This document shows positions 38,749 to 49,800 of a stretch of DNA of 64,000 bases, in pieces. The number at the start of each line of letters is the position of its first letter. Position 1 is the stretch's first letter. Made by a program: the position numbers and the translations under genes. Below the pieces are notes generated by a model that was not told the origin of the DNA, did no database searches, and saw nothing but the letters and a program-made list of their open reading frames with translations. This DNA comes from Phaeosaccion multiseriatum (Eukaryota > Protista > Ochrophyta, other classes), in the NCBI GenBank assembly GCA_965112735.1, contig OZ218955.1:2294001-2358000 (forward strand), written 5' to 3'.

Positions 38749-39938
38749 ATGACAGAAAGTGAGGAGGACGCAGCTCCTCTTTCTGCTGCTGATATCTCTC
38801 CAGCGACCTTTGCCCTGAGAGACGGCGATGCAGCACGCGAGGACCTGAGCTGGGATCTGAAAAACCTCGTGGTGCTTGACCCTCACGCAATCGACTTACC
38901 GCAAGGCGAACGCGGGGAAGCCACAGAACGCATACTGAACAGCCACACTCGTGACAATATGCAGCAGCTCATGGCGCGCCTGTTTTCCCTACCGTCCCAG
39001 CCTTCGGCCCTCGGCCCTGTGGCCGAACTACCGACCAAGGAGGCTCTCACTCTGCCGCGCGAGAAGCCTGTGCCCCCTCCCAGAGAAGAGACGAGATGGG
39101 AGAAGTTTGCAAAGGAGAAGGGGATCCAGGGGAGAAAGCGAGATCGAATGGTCTGGGATGAGGCCAGTAAGAAGTGGATGCCTCGCTGGGGCTACAAGAG
39201 AGCCAACGAGGGCGAGAGTGGACATGCTATTCTTGAGGTTAAAGATGGGGAGGATGCATTTAAGGACCCTTGGAGTGGCGCCAGGGCGGAGAAGCGAGCA
39301 AGAGTGGAGAAAAATCTAAAGAGCTCGGCGAATAATCGAGGGAAGGGCGGTGCTGGCGGTGGTATGACCCCTGGCATTCCTGTGGACCTCTCAAGCGGTG
39401 CGGCTGCTGGGGCGAAAAGAGGCGGCAAGAACACCAAGAAAGCCCTGGAGATGGTGCAGTCATCCACGGCGTCAATGGGCAAGTAAGTTCAAGTTGTTCG
39501 CTGTGGCGCAGTCTCGCTCGAGTGTTTTCAAGTTCTGTCTGTGGATGTACGTACGTGTTGATGTATTGCTGCTTGCCCTGCTCCTGCTCCTCCTCCTCAA
39601 CCACCCAACCTCCCCACTGGGGTATGTGCAGGTTTGACAAGGGCCGCGAAGGGGAACCAGACAAGGTGCGGCGGGGAGTGCGGCGGCAGTTCAAACCTGT
39701 GGTGCCCGCGTCGGCAGGCGAGCGGGATAGCTCCATGAAAATCCTGCACTCTGTCATGGTGAACAAGGGCAAGGGCGGCAAGGGCGGCAAGGCGGCCAGC
39801 AAGAGTGCAAAGGACAATCTCATCAGTTACGACGCAATAGAGGGGGGTGGCGGCGCGGGGGAGGGCCGATCCAAGTCAAAGAAGGGCAAGGCGGGCGTTG
39901 GCAAATTCAGGAAGATAACAAAGTCGAGAGCAAAGTAA
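38749..39938 (+). CDS. RRS1: Ribosome biogenesis regulatory protein RRS1
   Basis: RDNMQQLMARLFSLP, LPREKPVP, TRWEKFAKEKGI, WMPRWGYK, STASMGK|FDK; 2 exons. Confidence 0.93.
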
Positions 39939-39963: not shown

Positions 39964-41039
39964 TTATTTTGATTGCACACTTTGTTCGGTGGCAGTGTCC
40001 TTTCTCCATGGGTCGCTTTCCGTCGCGCCTGGGAAAGGCTCCTGTTGCTGCTGTTGTTGTTGTTGTTGTTGTTGTCCATGTTGTCTTTGGGTCTGCGTTG
40101 TGCCTCCCCGACCTGACCCTGCTCTTTTGGAAGACCCCACTTGCGAAGCCAAGTAAGACAACACTGCCTGGACCAACGCTTGCGCGGCTCCAGGAGAAGC
40201 GGCAGAGAACATAGTCGGTACGCCCTTCAGCGCCGGCTGCAGAATCGACCCAAAGATGGATCCAAGCGACCTCGTTGCAACCCCGATTCCTGTCATCAGT
40301 TCCTCCGGACTGCCCGGCCTGGTAGAAAAACTAGCGTATTCATCCAGCCGTCGCCGAACGAACGCCAGAGTGTTCTCACACCCAGCAGACTGATCCGACA
40401 GCATAAAAAGCTCCGCGCTAATGTACGTGGTGGCTATGAAGGCCCGTCTGGAATACCACGCCATATTCGTGGACCGGTCCCCTCCCACGAACGCAATGTC
40501 GTCGGCAAGGCGAGCCAGCGCTTCAGCGGTGGAAGCCACATTCTCCGGGCGTAGCCCTACAGACATTGCCTCCGGCCACGAGCTGACGTGCTCTTTAACA
40601 GCAAGCAAGCGTAGTTCCATGGCACGCTCCACCAGATGCAGCTGCAAATCCCCTCCTGCTGCGCGGCGGCCTTGCTCGCCCCCCCCTTCCCCTTCCGCAG
40701 CATGTTGTGCCAGCATCTGCTGCAACATGTCTTCTCGGGCGCGCTCCATGAAGAATAGAATCAGGTCCATGGCTCCTTTCTCGAACATACCCGCAGTCGT
40801 AGAGGGGAGACTGCCGAAAAGAGAGAAGAGAGCATCATGAGCAACAAGACTCCACAGAATGAGCCCGCATCATATCTGTCTCTTACCCGCTGGATTTCGC
40901 ACCCGCCGCAAGAGAGGCCTCTGTCCATCCGAAGGAGTGCACATGCTCGGTCAGAGCTGACTCGAGAATCTGCTGGCGGACATCCACAAAAGAAGACCCA
41001 CCCTGTCCAGAGCTGTGAGCGTCGTGCATTGATGCGGTA

Positions 41040-41086
<47 letters not shown>

Positions 41087-41326
41087 ACTGCTAATGCTCC
41101 TCGAGCTACCAACACTACTACAGCCACTGCTAGTGCTGCTCATCCCGCGCTTGCTCCAAGTCGAGGAGATGGTTGGAACATTTCGATCCACTACACGCCG
41201 GCGCTTGAGCCCCCTCCCCGGCCCCAGCACGGCTGCATTTAAGCTGCCCGGCCAGGTCTGAGAGAACGACCGGAGAGCGCCTTGCGCTCCCACGCGCTTT
41301 GCAGACCTGCCTATCGCGAAAAACAT
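39964..41326 (-). CDS. COQ9: Ubiquinone biosynthesis protein COQ9, mitochondrial
   Basis: ILESALTEHVHSFGWTEASLAAGA, MFEKGAMDLILFFM, SSWPEAMS, LADDIAFVGGDRSTNMAWYSRRA...YISAELFMLSDQS...TLAFVRRRL; Arg/Ser-rich presequence. Confidence 0.92.
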
Positions 41327-41420
41327 CGGTCCCTTCGCAGAGTGGGTTGTGCAATGGGGGAGCCACCTAACTTAAACTCCGCCCTTCCCGCGCTTTTTTT
41401 CTTTTCTCGGATCTTCCTCC

Positions 41421-43890
41421 ATGTCTGCTCCCGTGGTCGGCATTGTGGGCGGAGGACCGGTGGGTCTGACCCTATATGCGCTCTTGGCTCGCTATGGCGT
41501 GCCTTCCATCCTCTTTGAACGCCAGAGTGGACTCTCGACGCATCCGCAAGGGCACTTCATTAGCGCAAGGACGATGGAGATCTTTCGACACGGGCTTGGA
41601 CACGTGGACGCGCGGGTGCGGCAGGCAGGACCTCCGCCATCGGACTGGCGGTATGTGCGTGGCGGGGGGCTGAAATCTCTGCGCCCTTGGCGTGGCTGAG
41701 ATGACTCAGCCACCTTCTTGCCACTGCCAACCGATCAGGGATTTCGTCATGTGCTCCACCTTGAGAGGGCGAGAGTTTGCCCGCGTGGACAATATGACAG
41801 GGCAGCAAGGTAGGCAGTGTTGCAACTTGTCGGCGCGCGCGGTAGGGAAGGGGCAGCTATTCACGCCGCTCTTCTCTTGCACTTGTCTGGCTGTGCAGCC
41901 GCGCTCATGTCTCGACTCTCCTCGGTGGGCTGCGCTCATCTCTCCCAGAGCTCTCTCTCGCCGATATTGCTGGAAGAGGCTCACCGACTTGGCGCAAATG
42001 GGCCTGGGCAGATTGTGTTTGATGCCAATGTGGAAAGCATACAGGAGGAAGAGGACGGTGCTACCGTGACAGTCCGAAGAGCAGGAGGAAAGGAAGTGCA
42101 TAGCTTGAACTTTCGATACGTCGTTGCGGCCGATGGACCGCAGAGCCATTGCAGAGAGGCGATGGGCATTCGATGCCGTGGTGACCCCGAGCTGGGGCAT
42201 GTGGTGAACATCCACTTTAGCAGCCCGGAACTTGGGAGGCATCTCCGAGGCCGGCCAGGAATGTTGTACTTTGTCTACAACGAAGAGGTAGTGTGTGTCA
42301 TGGTTGCTCACGACGTACACAGAGGAGAGTGGGCGTGCCAGATCCCGTTCTTTGCGCCATGGCAAGACCACACAGTTGAGTACGAGATCTTTCCTTCTTG
42401 TTTGCAAGGTCGTTCATTCTTTTTTATTTGGTCGCGCTTGCACCCCCCGAACTGCACTCTGCAACGCATGCGGAAAAGCTGTTTTGCCAGTCGTTTGCCC
42501 GAGAGTGCGTGAAGCAAGCCATCGGTGGTATTGCGGGAGGGGTCGGCGGGGCGGAGGACATTGCCTTTGACATTCGGTCGGTGCAGCCCTGGACGATGAG
42601 ATCCCTCGTGGCGGAGGCTTTCCAGAGCAAGAATAAGCACGTCTTTTTGGCTGGAGATGCAGCACATCAGTTTCCACCCGCAGGGGGGTTTGGAATGAAT
42701 ACCGGGATACACGATGTCTTCAATCTTGCGTGGAAGCTCGCCCTTGCGACCAAAGGTGCGAGCCACGAGCGACTTTTGCAAACCTACGGCGAAGGTGAGA
42801 GTGAGTGGAATGGGGGCTAAATATCATTAAACTGACCGCGGTTTGGGTGCTTACGGAGACGCTGCCCCTGCTTTCTTTCCGAAATGACACTAAAGAAAGG
42901 AGACCGGTGGCTGAGGCGACGGCAGACCTCAGTGTTCGCAACTATAAGAGAAGCCTTCGCATGGCACGTGCTCTTGGATTGGATCCGGAGCATCCGCGTC
43001 TCTTGTTCCAGGTGCGAGGGTGGAGCGGAGTGGCAGTCTTGTAGAGAGGCGCCTTTGAAAGTCAGGGCATGAACTAGAGAGAGGCGCATGTTGGGAAAGG
43101 AAATGAGTGTCTTCGTCTAACAGACTCGAAACTTTTCATTCTCTCCCTGCTGGGGCTTCCCTTCCAGTCTCCTTTTGGAATGGCCCTGAGAGGAAAGGGG
43201 GCGAGAGAACGAACAGAGGCCCTTCTGGCACTCGGACGAAAGCCGTTGGCGTGTCTTCGGGAGACAGGCAATCCTTACGGCGACGCAAGAGTCAGGGATC
43301 TTCACGAGGTACTCGCAGCCGGTGCTGGCCTACCCCTCCTCTTTCCTGAGCACGACCTCTGCATGGCATACGGGCCGCAGGACCAAAGGGACTCTGGAAA
43401 TACAGCAGTGGAGCCTCCTGAGAGCCAGATTCGTGTCGGGGGTCGAATGCCTCACTTTGGGACCCTTCGGAGCGCAGACGACAACCGCTTGTCTTTATCT
43501 TCTTCAGTGGACCTGCCTGCGCAGCTACAATCTCTGAATTTCTCGCCAAAGTCTACCGGGAAGATGCACGTCGTCCTTCTCACTAGGCAAACCGGCGGTA
43601 CATCATGCACCTTCTGGCAGGAAGCCTTGGCACAACCTTTCCCTGGAAAATCTTTTGTAGAGGTGGTTCACATACCGATCCGAACCAGGGACCAGGGCGA
43701 TGGTTGTTATGACTGTCTATTGCTGCTACAGGCAATGGAACGACAGCAAGTATCTGCGGTTTTCGTGAGACCGGATGGGCACGTCGGGTGGCTTTGTCCC
43801 GAAATTCCCGCCCACGCTGTCGGGCCCACTTCGACGACGAATATTGACCTTTTGCACGAGGCTTTGACGGCGTGCTTGGCCATTCATTGA
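41421..43890 (+). CDS. FAD-dependent monooxygenase, CoqF/At1g24340-like (candidate demethoxyubiquinone hydroxylase)
   Basis: GGGPVG, HPQGHFISARTMEIFR, AHLSQ, VAADG, VNIHFSSPELG...RPGMLYFVYN...VMVAHD..GEWACQIPFF, LAGDAAHQFPPAGGFGMNTGIHD, VRPDGHVGW. Family assignment is from recalled motif similarity, not a search. Confidence 0.8.
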
Positions 43891-46514
43891 TTTAAATTCG
43901 CGCTTAAGACTCGGCCTCCGGGTATGTGCACTCCGCCAGGATAGACCAGTGCAACCAAGAGAGGTGAGCGATTGAGAGGATGTCGAGGCTTCGAGTGCAA
44001 GCCATCGACTGCCCCTTCAACATGACGTTCGCTTGCTGTAGAACTATTTTGGAAGACTCTGGACAGCCTCACCTCCGAGGGTATGTACGTAGGGGGGGAG
44101 GGAGGGGAGGGAGAAAAGGAAGGGAGGATGGGGGAGAGAGAGGGGAGGGAAGGGAGGAAGGGAAGAAGGGAGCGAGGGAGGAAGGGGAGGAAGAGAGGGA
44201 GGCAAGGGAAGATGATAGGGGCGTATGGAGGGAGAGAAAGAGAGCACTGTCATTCTGGTATCTCCAGGAGGCCTCAGGCCTGTGAGAGCGCGGGCGGAGC
44301 AGAGATTTCTTACCAGACTGGAGGCTGAGCACTAACCGGTCCCTCTGCCTCCCTCGCTCGAACGCGTGCTGTGCTGCGCTGGGCTGCTTGTGTGCAGCGA
44401 GAGGCCAGGGAGGGTGACAGCTTACTGTCTTCGTGCCTCGACGAGACAGGGCGGAGGAAGTACGGCACTTCGCAGCAGGTCAGCATAGCACTCAAGGGTG
44501 GGGCAACGAGAGCTGGAAGGACCCCGCTCGGATCTCTGCCCACTCTCTTCGGAGTGGGGGTGCTACCGCTCTTGCCGCCCGTGGGGCTAATTGGCGCTTG
44601 CTTCAATTGTTGGACCACTGGTCCTCGACGAGAGTATTCCAGTACACTCACCGGACTGTTTAGGACGCCCTTGGCTGGGCTGGACGGATACTGACGGCAG
44701 ACACGATGCCTCCACGGCTACTCGGATGAATGGGGGTGAAGGGGAGCGTGGGGCCCAAGCCCCGCTACATCCGAACACCAGTGGCCGTCCACCCTCGAGG
44801 GGGCGGCCCGCTTTGGAGATTCTTTTGGTCTCCAACGGGGGAGCCCATTGCGGGGCTACGCTCTTAGTGAAGAGTCCTTCCCCCAACATCGGCGACGCCT
44901 CGAATCACCTCATACCCCGTTTCACAGCTGTCGACGACCTGGAGGCGAAGTCACCCACCTGAGTGCTCAGAACTAGCGACGCCGCGGATGTAGATGATGT
45001 TCCTCAGCACTCGGTGACGGCGGAGAGGAGGAGCGGCTTTCCCCCCTTGACAGGGCCGGATCTTTCCAAGGGGCTGCTCACACCGAGCTTCTTCGAGGAT
45101 CAAGAGGCACGTCTTCGGCCTCGCGAGTAGCGGAGAGAAGGTGTGTTTGCGTGCGTGTGCCTCCAGGAGCCCAGAGGGGGGAGAGGAGCGGGAGGGGCAT
45201 GGGAAGAGGTCTAATCTTTTCGTCGTACACTTTCCAAAGTAGCAATAGGAAGCAAGCAAGATGGGAAGTGTGGCTCTAAATGCGAGACCCACGGAGCAAC
45301 GCAGGCCCAGCGACGGTTGAATGCCGTTGCGTTCCAACCGGGCTGGAGCTCCAGCACTAGTGGTCGACTGAGTGGCTCCCATTCATACCCGACTCACCGC
45401 TCCAAGCCCACGCCTGCTCCCTCCCGTACGTGTGTATGTATGTGGTGGTACATGTCCCCTCGCAGTGGGTCATACCCGTGCTGGTCAACAGCGCGCCTCG
45501 TCCACGCACGGCGACCAAGGTTGAGGTGCTTATAGTACATCTTGGCGAGCACACGCAGGGCTGCCACATGTGATTTGCAAGCCGCACAGGACCCCCTTCC
45601 TCTCCTCCCCTCGCCCCTCTCCCCGCCACCCCATCGTAGTCATCACCCTGCAGTAGCAGTACGAGCCGAGCATGATTACGGTGTTCTACTTCGCTAACGG
45701 CCCCAATGAACACTCTCCGTCCTCATGAGTATGAGGTGCGTGGTTGCGTGCGTGTGGCCCAGAGACTGTAACGCACACCACACTTCGGTCGAACAGCAGC
45801 AGCATTAGCAGCAGTAACAGAATCAGCAGCAGTCGCAGCCTGTGCGTGTGCTCACCCCCCTCCAGATTCTGCCAAGTGCTTTTCTCGGAGGAAGATGCGG
45901 ACCAATAACGGGTCGCTCACGGTATGGACCGGCGGGGGGGCCAGTGGGACGCCTCTACCCTCTGAGCCTTCAGAGCCTTTGCAGATCGAAGGCCGGGCAC
46001 GGCGGGGCAGAGCAAGGCGGGGCGAGGGGAGGGCTCGTTCGGCCAGCAGTGGGGAAGGGAGGGAGGGAGGGCAAGGAAGCAGTGGGAAAAGGGAAGGCAG
46101 CAGTGAAAGTCCCACGTGGGAATGCCTCGGATGTGTGACATGCGCGAGCGGTGAAGAGTGTGCTACCGTGTCCGTAATGTAAGTATGGCCTGTGAAGTGG
46201 GGTGTACATGAGGTATATCTGTGCGCCGAGAGTAAGCACTGCGTAGCTCACGTAGACAGAGCCTTTCGCTGGGACAGAGCAAAGCGACCCTACCCTGACG
46301 CTGCCCGGCGGGGCGCTGTGGGTGACCGCCAGTCATCATTCATTCAGAACGAGTGCCATGTGTAAAGAGGATAGGCCAGGGTTGTCTCACTCAACTCCTA
46401 CTAAGGCAGCGAAGGAGGATGTAGAGCATCAGCACCAGAATAAGAAGCGGAGAGTTTTCCAAATGACAACGATCGATAATCCGGATTCGAACATGTACAC
46501 GTGCAAAATGTAAA

Positions 46515-46865
46515 CGGTGCTTCAGCAGCGGAGCCAAGCCAAGCCAAGCCACGGAAGTTCCGTTCTCGCAGAGTGGAGTCGACGCGGACAAACAGGGTCT
46601 TGAGAGCCGAGGGGTAGGGGGTGGAGCGTGGGCGCGTGTGTGGACCCCGAGGGGGGTTTTAGGGTAGAAATATATATGGCAGCAGATGAAGAGCAGTGTT
46701 CTCTGCTGCTCGAGATCAGAAGAGGAGGAGACCTGCTGTACTCGCCACCCTACCGTGATTGAAGGAGATCAAGAGCAGTTACGGGGGTGTGTGCAAGCAG
46801 GGAGGAGAGTAGAGACTGTGGTGTAGAAAAGCAAGGATCGCAGTAGCTAGGGCCCGACTGCTTCT
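46515..46865 (-). mobile_element. Diverged, inverted partial copy of the 717-bp element found inside the satellite
   Basis: Reverse complement aligns by eye to ~56288-56620 (GTGGAGTCGAC, GTGTGGACCCCGAGGGGGG, CTGCTGTACTCGCCACCCTAC, GGGCCCGACTGCTTCT). Confidence 0.85.
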
Positions 46866-49800
46866 GAGAGCCCAATCTGACCCCTGTGCTATTGGCTTCA
46901 ATACTAGAGGTTCAGGATATTTTGACGAATTGGACCCAAAGCCCGGATTTGTGGGGCCCAAACAGCCCAAACAGCCCAAACGAGGCATTTGCTGGCCACA
47001 CCATACCCGCGCAGGCCGATGCATGACTACGACTGGCCCAACCGACACACCACATGGCCACAATGCCGCCAAGTTGGAACTGGCATGGGCCCAAACCGCC
47101 CAATCTGGCCCCTCACTGGACCCAAAGCCGGGGTTTGTGGGGCCCAAACAGCCCAAACGAGGCATTTGCTGGCCACACCATACCCGCGCAGGAGACTGGA
47201 CGACTGCGACTGGCCCAACCGACACACCACATGGCCACAATGCCGCCAAGTTGGAGCTGGCATGGGCCCAAAACGCCCAATCTGGCCCCTCACTGGACCC
47301 AAAGCCGGGGTTTGTGGGGCCCAAACAGCCCAAACGAGGCATTTGCTGGCCACACCGTGCCCGCGCAGGAGACTGGACGACTGCGACGGGCCTAACCGAC
47401 ACACCACATGGCCACAACTCCGCTAATTCGGAACTGGCATGGGCCCAAAACGCCCAATCTGGCCCCTCACTGGACCCAAAGCCGGGGTTTGTGGGTTCTA
47501 ACCAGCCCAAACGAGGCATTTGCTCTCAACACCATGCCCGCGCAGGCCATTGGATGACTACGACTGGCCCAATCGACACACTACATGGCCACAATGCCGC
47601 CAAGGTGGAACTGGCATGGGCCCAAAACGCCCAATCTGGCCCCTCGAGGGACCCAACGCCATCAGGGTTTGTGGTGGCCCAAACACCCCAAACGAGGCAT
47701 TTGCTGGCCACACCATGCCCGCGCAGGCCGATGCATGACTGCGGCTGGCCCAACCGACACACCACATGGCCACAACGTCGCCAAGTTGGAACTGGCATGG
47801 GCCCAAAACGCCCAATCTGGCCCCTCGAGGGACTCAAAGCCAGGGTTTGTGGGGCCCAAACAGCCCAAACGAGGCATTTGCTGGCCACACCATGCCCGCG
47901 CAGGCCGATGCATGACTGCGACTGGCCCAACCGACACACCACATGGCAACAACCCTGCCAAGTTGGAACTGGCATGGGCCCAAAACGCCCAATCTGGCCC
48001 CTCACTGGACCCAAAGCCGGGGTTTGTGGGGCCCAAACAGCCCAAACGAGGCATTTGCTGGCCACACCATACCCGCGCAGGCCGATGCATGACTGCGACT
48101 GTCCCAACCGACACACCACATGGCCACAACCCTGCCAAGTTGGAACTGGCATGGGCCCAAAACGCCAGATCTGGCCCCTCACTGGACCCAAAGCCAGGGT
48201 TTGTCGGGCCCAAACAGCCCAAACGAGGCATTTGCTGGCCACACCATGCCCGCGCAGGAGACTGGACGACTGCGACGGGCCTAACGGACACACCACATGG
48301 CCACAACTCCGCTAATTCGGAACTGGCATGGGCCCAAAACGCCCAATCTGGCCCCTCACTGGACCCAAAGCCGGGGTTTGTGGGTTCTAACCAGCCCAAA
48401 CGAGGTATTTGCTCTCAACACCATGCCCGCGCAGGCCATTGGACGACTGCGACTGGCCCAACCGACACACCAGATGGCCACAACGCCGCCAAGTTGGAAG
48501 TGGCATGGGCCCTAAACGCCCAATCTGGCCCCTCGAGGGACCCAAAGCCATCAGGGTTTGTGGTGGCCCAAACAGCCCAAACGAGGCATTTGATGGCCAC
48601 ACCATGCCCGCGCAGGCCGATGCATGACTGCGACTGGCCCCACCGACACACCACATGGCCACAACGCCGCCGAGTTGGAAGTGGCATGGGCCCAAAACGC
48701 CCAATCTGGCCCCTCACTGGACCCAAAGCCGGGGTTTGTGGGGCCCAAACAGCCCAAACGAGGCATTTGCTGGCCACACCATGCCCGCGCAGGGCGATGC
48801 ATGACTGCGACTGGCCCCACCGACACACCACATGGCCACAACGCCGCCGAGTTGGAAGTGGCATGGGCCCAAAACGCCCAATCTGGCCCCTCACTGGACC
48901 CAAAGCCGGGGTTTGTGGGGCCCAAACAGCCCAAACGAGGCATTTGCTGGCCACACCATGCCCGCGCAGGGCGATGCATGACTGCGACTGGCCCCACCGA
49001 CACACCACATGGCCACAACGCCGCCGAGTTGGAAGTGGCATGGGCCCAAAACGCCCAATCTGGCCCCTCACTGGACCCAAAGCCGGGGTTTGTGGGGCCC
49101 AAACAGCCCAAACGAGGCATTTGCTGGCCACACCGTGCCCGCGCAGGAGACTGGACGACTGCGACTGGCCTAACCGACACACTACATGGCCACAACGTCG
49201 CCAAGTTGGAACTGGCATGGGCCCAAAACGCCCAATCTGGCCCCTCACTGGACCCAAAGCCGGGGTTTGTGGGGCCCAAACAGCCCAAACGAGGCATTTG
49301 CTGGCCACACCATACCCGTGCAGGCCGATGCGTGACTGCGACTGGCCCAACCGACACACTACATGGCCACAACGCCGCCAAGTTGGAACTGGCATGGGCC
49401 CAAAACGACTCAAGACCGGGGTTTGTGGGGCCCAAACAGCCCAAACGAGGCATTTGCTGGCCACACCATGCCCGCGTAGGAGACTGGACGACTGCGACTG
49501 GCCTAACCGACACACTACATGGCCACAACGTCGCCAAGTTGGAACTGACATGGGCCCAAAACGCCCAATCTGGCCCCTCACTGGACCCAAAGCCGGGGTT
49601 TGTCGGGCCAAAACAGCCCAAACGAGGCATTTGCTGGCCACACCGTGCCCGCGCAGGAGACTGGACGACTGCGACTGGCCCAACCGACACACTACATGGC
49701 CACAACGTCGCCAAGTTGGAACTGGCATGGGCCTAAAACGCCCAATCTGGCCCCTCACTGGACCCAAAGCCGGGGTTTGTGGGGCCCGAACAGCCCAAAC

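Follow-up and report, generated by a model that had tools for sequence, protein, structure and literature searches.

The window analysed here comprises 64,000 nucleotides from the ochrophyte alga Phaeosaccion multiseriatum (contig OZ218955.1 of assembly GCA_965112735.1, positions 2,294,001 to 2,358,000 of the forward strand) and contains, head to head, a gene for the ubiquinone biosynthesis protein COQ9 and a gene for a flavin-dependent hydroxylase of the CoqF type. The DNA is eukaryotic, with a G+C content of ~59% and introns of the GT-AG type, and belongs to contig 6 of a 67-Mb assembly in 22 contigs. A previous sequence-only reading had placed the start codons of COQ9 and CoqF at 41326 (minus strand) and 41421 (plus strand), respectively, with 94 bp between them. 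The list of open reading frames (ORFs) and the sequence itself confirmed both positions and a distance of exactly 94 bp. Divergent orientation combined with a short spacer is the arrangement that characterizes gene pairs with a bidirectional promoter, and COQ9 and CoqF display it. The spacer, for which we infer a promoter role, has to house both 5′ untranslated regions (UTRs) and any shared promoter. A comparison of the spacer with the regions upstream of COQ7, COQ6, and COQ4 was uninformative, as the only common words were those of a purine/pyrimidine tract shared with COQ7. The coordinates of all features are compiled in Table 1.

Table 1. Features of the COQ9/CoqF locus (positions in the window) and related genes elsewhere in the assembly
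Feature	Position	Strand	Description
Intergenic spacer between both ATGs	41327..41420	none	94 bp; pyrimidine-rich tract on the plus strand
COQ9 exon 1	40887..41326	-	Start codon, Arg-rich N-terminus, poly-Ser, COQ9_N helix region; Pfam COQ9_N 34.5 bits
COQ9 intron	40811..40886	-	76 nt, GT-AG; predicted, joining restores a single open frame
COQ9 exon 2	39964..40810	-	Lipid-binding domain, Gln-rich tail, stop; Pfam COQ9 81.7 bits
CoqF exon 1	41421..41650	+	Start, GxGxxG Rossmann motif (residues 10-15), catalytic His H45; FAD_binding_3 55 bits
CoqF exon 2	41739..41809	+	W-R-x-F motif with CoqF-specific Phe F79; splice model
CoqF exon 3	41899..42408	+	Substrate domain, DG motif, second CoqF-specific Phe F225; FAD_binding_3 60 bits
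CoqF exon 4	42504..42794	+	GDAAH FAD/NAD(P)H motif region; FAD_binding_3 92.6 bits
CoqF exon 5	42896..43011	+	Conserved ERRPVA...SVRN linker, agrees with family consensus; splice model
CoqF exon 6	43168..43890	+	C-terminal extension, RPDGH at residue 607, stop; Rng_hyd_C 23.4 bits, below cut-off
Intact COQ7	G000:C4:4644674-4645489 (contig 4; = L001:1099-1914)	+	Single exon, 271 amino acids; Pfam COQ7 115.8 bits
Second COQ7-like gene	G000:C4, about 4570240-4571004 (= L002:1372-2136)	-	254 amino acids; Pfam COQ7 51 bits
COQ6	C1:2211050-2212936		True COQ6 of the genome, separate from the CoqF locus

COQ9 is a TetR-fold protein that binds isoprenoid lipids and, in animals and yeast, passes a quinone intermediate to the C6-hydroxylase. 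The assignment of the minus-strand gene to COQ9, already made in the sequence-only reading, was borne out by both of its Pfam domains, COQ9_N and COQ9, which scored above the Pfam cut-off, and by the match of exon 2 to the human COQ9 chains 4rhp and 6awl over the lipid-binding core (E 2e-18). The two exons join to a frame of 1287 nt encoding a predicted protein of 428 amino acids. A GT donor follows directly after position 40887, an in-frame stop lies 17 codons 5′ of the ATG, and the peptide across the exon junction agrees with the COQ9 fold. The gene is present as a single copy in the genome. When compared to human and yeast COQ9 and to the COQ7:COQ9 complex (PDB 7SSP/7SSS, 4RHP, 6AWL), the algal protein has the COQ9_N/COQ9 domains in common with them, as well as a presequence-like N-terminus, which in the alga is rich in Arg and lacks acidic residues. 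It differs from them by its long poly-Ser and poly-Gln inserts, and its gene differs by the head-to-head position opposite CoqF, for which no other example is known. The inserts derive from trinucleotide repeats at 40037-40084 and 41033-41103, which translate into 11 consecutive Gln and ~19 consecutive Ser; public contigs break at both repeats. A word-index protein search with exon 2 yielded 4597 candidates, none of them significant, and was uninformative on relatives, the words having probably been absorbed by the Gln/Ser tracts.

The plus-strand gene consists of six exons with a joined frame of 1941 nt, predicted to encode 646 amino acids. Its predicted introns of 88, 89, 95, 101, and 156 nt are all of the GT-AG type, and the junction peptides agree with the family consensus. 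The intron at 42409-42503 was selected as the sole in-frame GT-AG intron of normal size, and it agrees with the family alignment; an alternative 29-nt intron after 42379 was rejected because it is too short and would insert ~32 residues that are lacking in the family. Database, Pfam, and PDB searches were run exon by exon, and the joined CoqF and COQ9 models were used for the alignment, the tree, and tblastn searches against fetched loci. Three ORF pieces matched the Pfam domain FAD_binding_3 (55, 60, and 93 bits), and the motifs GGGPVG at residue 10, DG at residue 179, GDAAH at residue 321, and RPDGH were located in the joined model. Exons 5 and 6 contribute ~240 residues beyond the FAD domain, with blocks that are conserved in algal and plant CoqFs. 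No match was obtained for exon 6 among the PDB sequences.

The class A flavin monooxygenase CoqF employs flavin adenine dinucleotide (FAD), NAD(P)H, and O2 for the C6 hydroxylation of demethoxy-ubiquinone. The class A motifs GxGxxG, DG, and GD[AS]AH are all present within the FAD_binding_3 domain of the algal protein. The family has been defined by cluster membership, by the residues His88, Phe121, and Phe283 (Arabidopsis numbering), by a long C-terminal extension, and by a mitochondrial presequence (PMC8654299). Family scans placed the algal monooxygenase with hydroxylases of the RdmE/TfdB/PRK06126 type and far from UbiH/UbiF/COQ6, and the PDB sequence matches concurred. Against NCBIfam, exon 4 gave 98.8 bits with PRK06126 and 33 bits with the UbiH/UbiF/COQ6 family. 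COQ6, UbiH, UbiF, and UbiI are flavin monooxygenases of the same pathway and have FAD_binding_3 in common with CoqF, but the algal CoqF reached just 22-33 bits with the models of these Ubi-OHases and COQ6 as compared to 71-99 bits with PRK06126. An exhaustive search with exon 3 retrieved mainly eukaryotic proteins of about 600-750 amino acids, with algal and plant CoqFs ranking first; the named matches came from brown algae, a raphidophyte, a haptophyte, green algae, a liverwort, and angiosperms.

The phylogenetic tree was built from 82 rows, namely the CoqF model, 41 eukaryotic, and 40 bacterial homologues, with support given by the Shimodaira-Hasegawa-like approximate likelihood ratio test (SH-aLRT). 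The Arabidopsis CoqF was represented by its orthologues from Sesamum, Solanum, Phaseolus, and Nelumbo. A eukaryotic clade with a support of 100 comprised all 41 eukaryotic rows together with the CoqF model and a single contig that had been binned as bacterial, which sets the model apart from 39 of the 40 bacterial homologues. Within this clade, the model fell into an ochrophyte group with the raphidophyte Chattonella and four brown algae (support 97), and this group was nested in a larger one that takes in Nannochloropsis (support 99). The residues H45, F79, and F225 of the model occupy the columns of Sesamum H89, F122, and F282, which served as a proxy for Arabidopsis positions 88, 121, and 283. 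These columns hold H/F/F in each of the 41 eukaryotic CoqFs. At the F79 column, the bacterial relatives carry mostly Val, Ile, or Thr and never Phe, and at the F225 column they carry mostly Trp. For the C-terminal extension, the family definition gives about 226 residues, and the algal protein has the ~240 residues of exons 5 and 6. Clade, triad, and extension thus all fit, and, as judged from its sequence, the monooxygenase is a CoqF in every respect except the presequence. The CoqF-like identity proposed in the sequence-only reading was therefore upheld by phylogeny, residue triad, and family scans alike, which assign the enzyme to CoqF and not to the COQ6/UbiF/H/I type. Apart from the gene at this locus, a scan of the genome revealed no further gene of the CoqF type. 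The contig binned as bacterial is JASJED010000079.1, assigned to the Desulfobacterales. Its CoqF-type gene, with W, Y/F, F, H, and Q at the marker columns, nests in the eukaryotic clade beside a eukaryote-type protein (support 99), and the contig is probably either a mis-binned eukaryotic contig or the product of a transfer.

The relation of the algal enzyme to characterized proteins can be summarized as follows. With Arabidopsis CoqF (At1g24340; PMC8654299), it shares the clade, as seen with the angiosperm orthologues, the His/Phe/Phe residues, the FAD motifs, and the long C-terminal extension, and its identity to members of the characterized lineages is about 36-48%. It differs from the Arabidopsis protein in that it is devoid of an N-terminal mitochondrial presequence and in that the alga, whose CoqF activity is predicted, also encodes COQ7. 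The bacterial and fungal proteins of cluster II (TfdB, a 2,4-dichlorophenol 6-monooxygenase, and HbpA, as well as RdmE and GrhO5 in the PDB) belong to the same class A fold family and have the C-terminal domain in common with CoqF. Proteins of this type were the top PDB matches and the top NCBIfam matches (PRK06126, RdmE) of the algal enzyme, which is distinguished from the bacterial relatives by Phe at both positions where these have mostly Val/Ile and Trp.

The algal CoqF has only nine residues ahead of its GxGxxG motif, and an in-frame TAA codon is located at 41373, 16 codons upstream of the ATG. From this TAA to base 41440, the sequence contains no AG dinucleotide. Lacking an acceptor site, this sequence offers no way of splicing a further exon in front of GxGxxG. 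The previous remark that the ATG of the monooxygenase is not followed by an obvious presequence was thus correct and can be extended, since none can be spliced on. Among the sampled eukaryotic CoqFs, 14 of 41 likewise begin directly at the Rossmann motif, and in one of these 14, which is a genomic locus, an in-frame stop is likewise located upstream and AG is missing. We conclude that a short N-terminus is a recurrent state of the CoqF family. The targeting question raised for this protein is real, and it is common to other CoqF orthologues.

The sequence-only reading had paired COQ9 with CoqF on the premise that COQ7 is absent. This premise was refuted when the whole genome was scanned with the COQ7 profile, as an intact COQ7 was uncovered on contig 4. 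In alignments with human COQ7 and with orthologues from algae and bacteria, the protein retains all six iron ligands (E, ExxH, E, ExxH). Its closest relatives come from Tribonema, Heterosigma, and Nannochloropsis, and in the last of these COQ7 and CoqF are both present at the genus level. A survey of the family listed 17 species with both CoqF and COQ7, for which sampling artefacts could not be excluded (PMC8654299). In P. multiseriatum, the two contigs that carry CoqF and the intact COQ7 are both large and belong to one assembly of 22 contigs, which speaks for a real co-occurrence of the two enzymes in a single organism. Thus, the alga has both types of C6-hydroxylase, and the head-to-head arrangement is no proof that CoqF has replaced the di-iron enzyme. 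The first in-frame ATG of COQ7 adds a hydrophobic, signal-peptide-like stretch in front of the Arg-rich presequence, which begins at the second Met. The second COQ7-like gene is located ~75 kb from the intact one and has lost all six iron-ligand residues. Its look-alikes in the Atlas are COQ7 clusters only, and it is possible that the gene encodes a pseudo-enzyme. The genome also contains COQ4 and, in addition to COQ6, two FAD_binding_3 genes that resemble zeaxanthin epoxidase (G000:C2:636485-636619) and a kynurenine-monooxygenase-like enzyme (G000:C13:2108430-2109023). The zeaxanthin-epoxidase-like gene is in keeping with a photosynthetic heterokont and, taken together with the relatives of COQ7 and the CoqF tree, points to a heterokont alga.

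We consider it probable that the locus represents two orthologues of the ubiquinone pathway which, in a gene-dense setting and specifically in this lineage, diverge over a 94-bp spacer, with COQ9 serving COQ7, CoqF, or both. With FAD and NAD(P)H, CoqF would hydroxylate demethoxy-ubiquinone, as suggested by its family membership and conserved residues. COQ9 would bind isoprenoid quinone intermediates and present them to the hydroxylase, which may be COQ7, CoqF, or both. The presentation role of COQ9 is established for COQ7; plants possess Coq9 and CoqF without Coq7, and the relation of Coq9 to CoqF is not yet clear (PMC10385794). Given the common spacer, the two genes of the alga probably have promoter elements in common and are likely co-expressed, and co-regulation is plausible. 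The enzyme activity, the mitochondrial location, the shared promoter, and any physical COQ9-CoqF contact are our inferences. In Arabidopsis, CoqF is co-expressed with Coq9 (PMC8654299), which makes a functional tie plausible.

Several observations weigh against this reading. COQ9 was found beside CoqF at none of 11 other eukaryotic CoqF loci, as determined from gene calls and from tblastn searches of the flanks. Six of these loci came from Laminaria, Prymnesium, Discosporangium, a metagenome scaffold, a read assembly, and a JGI contig; the other five were those of eight metagenome loci of the Phe/Phe CoqF type that had an upstream flank of at least 4.6 kb. All 11 are distant relatives with at most about 50% identity, and the head-to-head arrangement appears to be lineage-specific. 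The inference of the sequence-only reading is also weakened by the packing of the neighbouring genes, which alternate in strand and are separated by very small gaps: the stops of RRS1 (39938) and COQ9 (39964) are 25 bp apart, and ~184 bp separate the apparent start of a G-patch gene (38564) from the start of RRS1 (38749). As these gaps are equally small, the 94-bp divergent spacer is unexceptional for this stretch. A further point against the favoured reading is that CoqF itself is devoid of the mitochondrial presequence, which has been treated as part of the origin of the family (PMC8654299), while COQ4, COQ6, and COQ9 of the same genome have presequence-like N-termini. The stretch is contained in four sequencing runs of one sample, in each case as genomic-type contigs without joints. 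As to whether tight divergent pairs occur throughout the genome, Pfam searches with the candidate divergent neighbours of COQ4 and of COQ7 and with an ORF upstream of COQ6 gave no match.

The same tight packing, the missing linkage at the 11 other loci, and the intact COQ7 would all be in line with an adjacency that results from gene packing and chance, with COQ9 being the partner of COQ7, as it is in animals and fungi, and CoqF acting independently, redundantly, or conditionally. According to a rough estimate that assumes a pathway of roughly a dozen genes, a given gene has a pathway partner as its immediate divergent neighbour in ~1 of 1000 cases, which speaks against a coincidence at this particular locus, as does the co-expression of CoqF and Coq9 in Arabidopsis (PMC8654299). 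In a genome of thousands of genes, however, a few neighbouring pairs from the same pathway are expected by chance. We regard such a fortuitous neighbourhood as a serious possibility, albeit not the favoured one. With COQ7 present and the pairing not seen at the other loci examined, adjacency is weak evidence for a joint function of COQ9 and CoqF. A dedicated module, in which CoqF has taken the place of COQ7 as the client of COQ9, would account for the head-to-head genes with their 94-bp spacer, the genuine CoqF with its catalytic triad, and the occurrence of Coq9 and CoqF without Coq7 in plants (PMC10385794). It is, however, unlikely in view of the COQ7 with its six iron ligands and of the unconserved pairing in the loci examined. 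Thus, the gene identities and the arrangement given in the sequence-only reading stood, whereas the claim of a COQ9-CoqF partnership in the absence of COQ7 does not fit this genome; the module interpretation overreaches. Both genes are of known kinds, and their pairing appears to be lineage-specific.

The N-terminus of CoqF leads to a different proposal, namely that the enzyme is not a mitochondrial ubiquinone enzyme but hydroxylates a different phenol or quinone in some other part of the cell, leaving the C6 step to COQ7. That an N-terminal extension is impossible for CoqF, while COQ4, COQ6, and COQ9 have presequence-like N-termini, would be in line with such a role, as would the presence of COQ7 and the use of other phenols by bacterial and fungal relatives of CoqF (PMC8654299). 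Since the His and both CoqF-specific Phe residues are retained, the short N-terminus recurs in the family, and the gene is the sole one of the CoqF type found in the genome, we likewise rate this proposal as improbable. In marine algae, flavodoxin substitutes for ferredoxin. By analogy, the iron-dependent COQ7 and the iron-free CoqF might be interchangeable and both be served by COQ9, with the COQ9-CoqF pair as a co-regulated unit that steps in whenever COQ7 is limited by iron or by another condition. In this scenario, COQ9 may also help the presequence-less CoqF to reach or to dock at the mitochondrial inner membrane. We consider the scenario speculative and rather doubtful.

Regarding the surroundings of the locus, RRS1 (38749-39938, plus strand) consists of two exons, and the ORF stop at 39484-39486, directly after an STASMGK motif, lies inside the intron. 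Because its stop codon (39936-39938) is only 25 bp away from that of COQ9 on the opposite strand, the 3′ UTRs of the two genes overlap or are very short. On the other side, CoqF is the last identifiable gene ahead of a long satellite array that fills the rest of the stretch. The region from the CoqF stop to the onset of the satellite (43891-46870) is without a recognizable gene, and Pfam searches with the ORFs at 43980-44285 and 46779-47519 gave no match. From about 46-48 kb onwards, the base skews shift sharply.

The connection between COQ9 and CoqF in plant and algal ubiquinone biosynthesis is not yet clear (PMC10385794). To a small extent, the genomic context of this locus speaks for a link. 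The firmer point is the occurrence of CoqF and an intact COQ7 in one assembly, which bears on the doubt about sampling artefacts that surrounds the 17 species reported previously (PMC8654299). The interest of the locus is modest and lies in a lineage-specific head-to-head pair, a genuine co-occurrence of CoqF and COQ7, and a CoqF devoid of a presequence. Since a considerable fraction of the CoqF family is devoid of an N-terminal presequence, the locus also illustrates a testable targeting problem.

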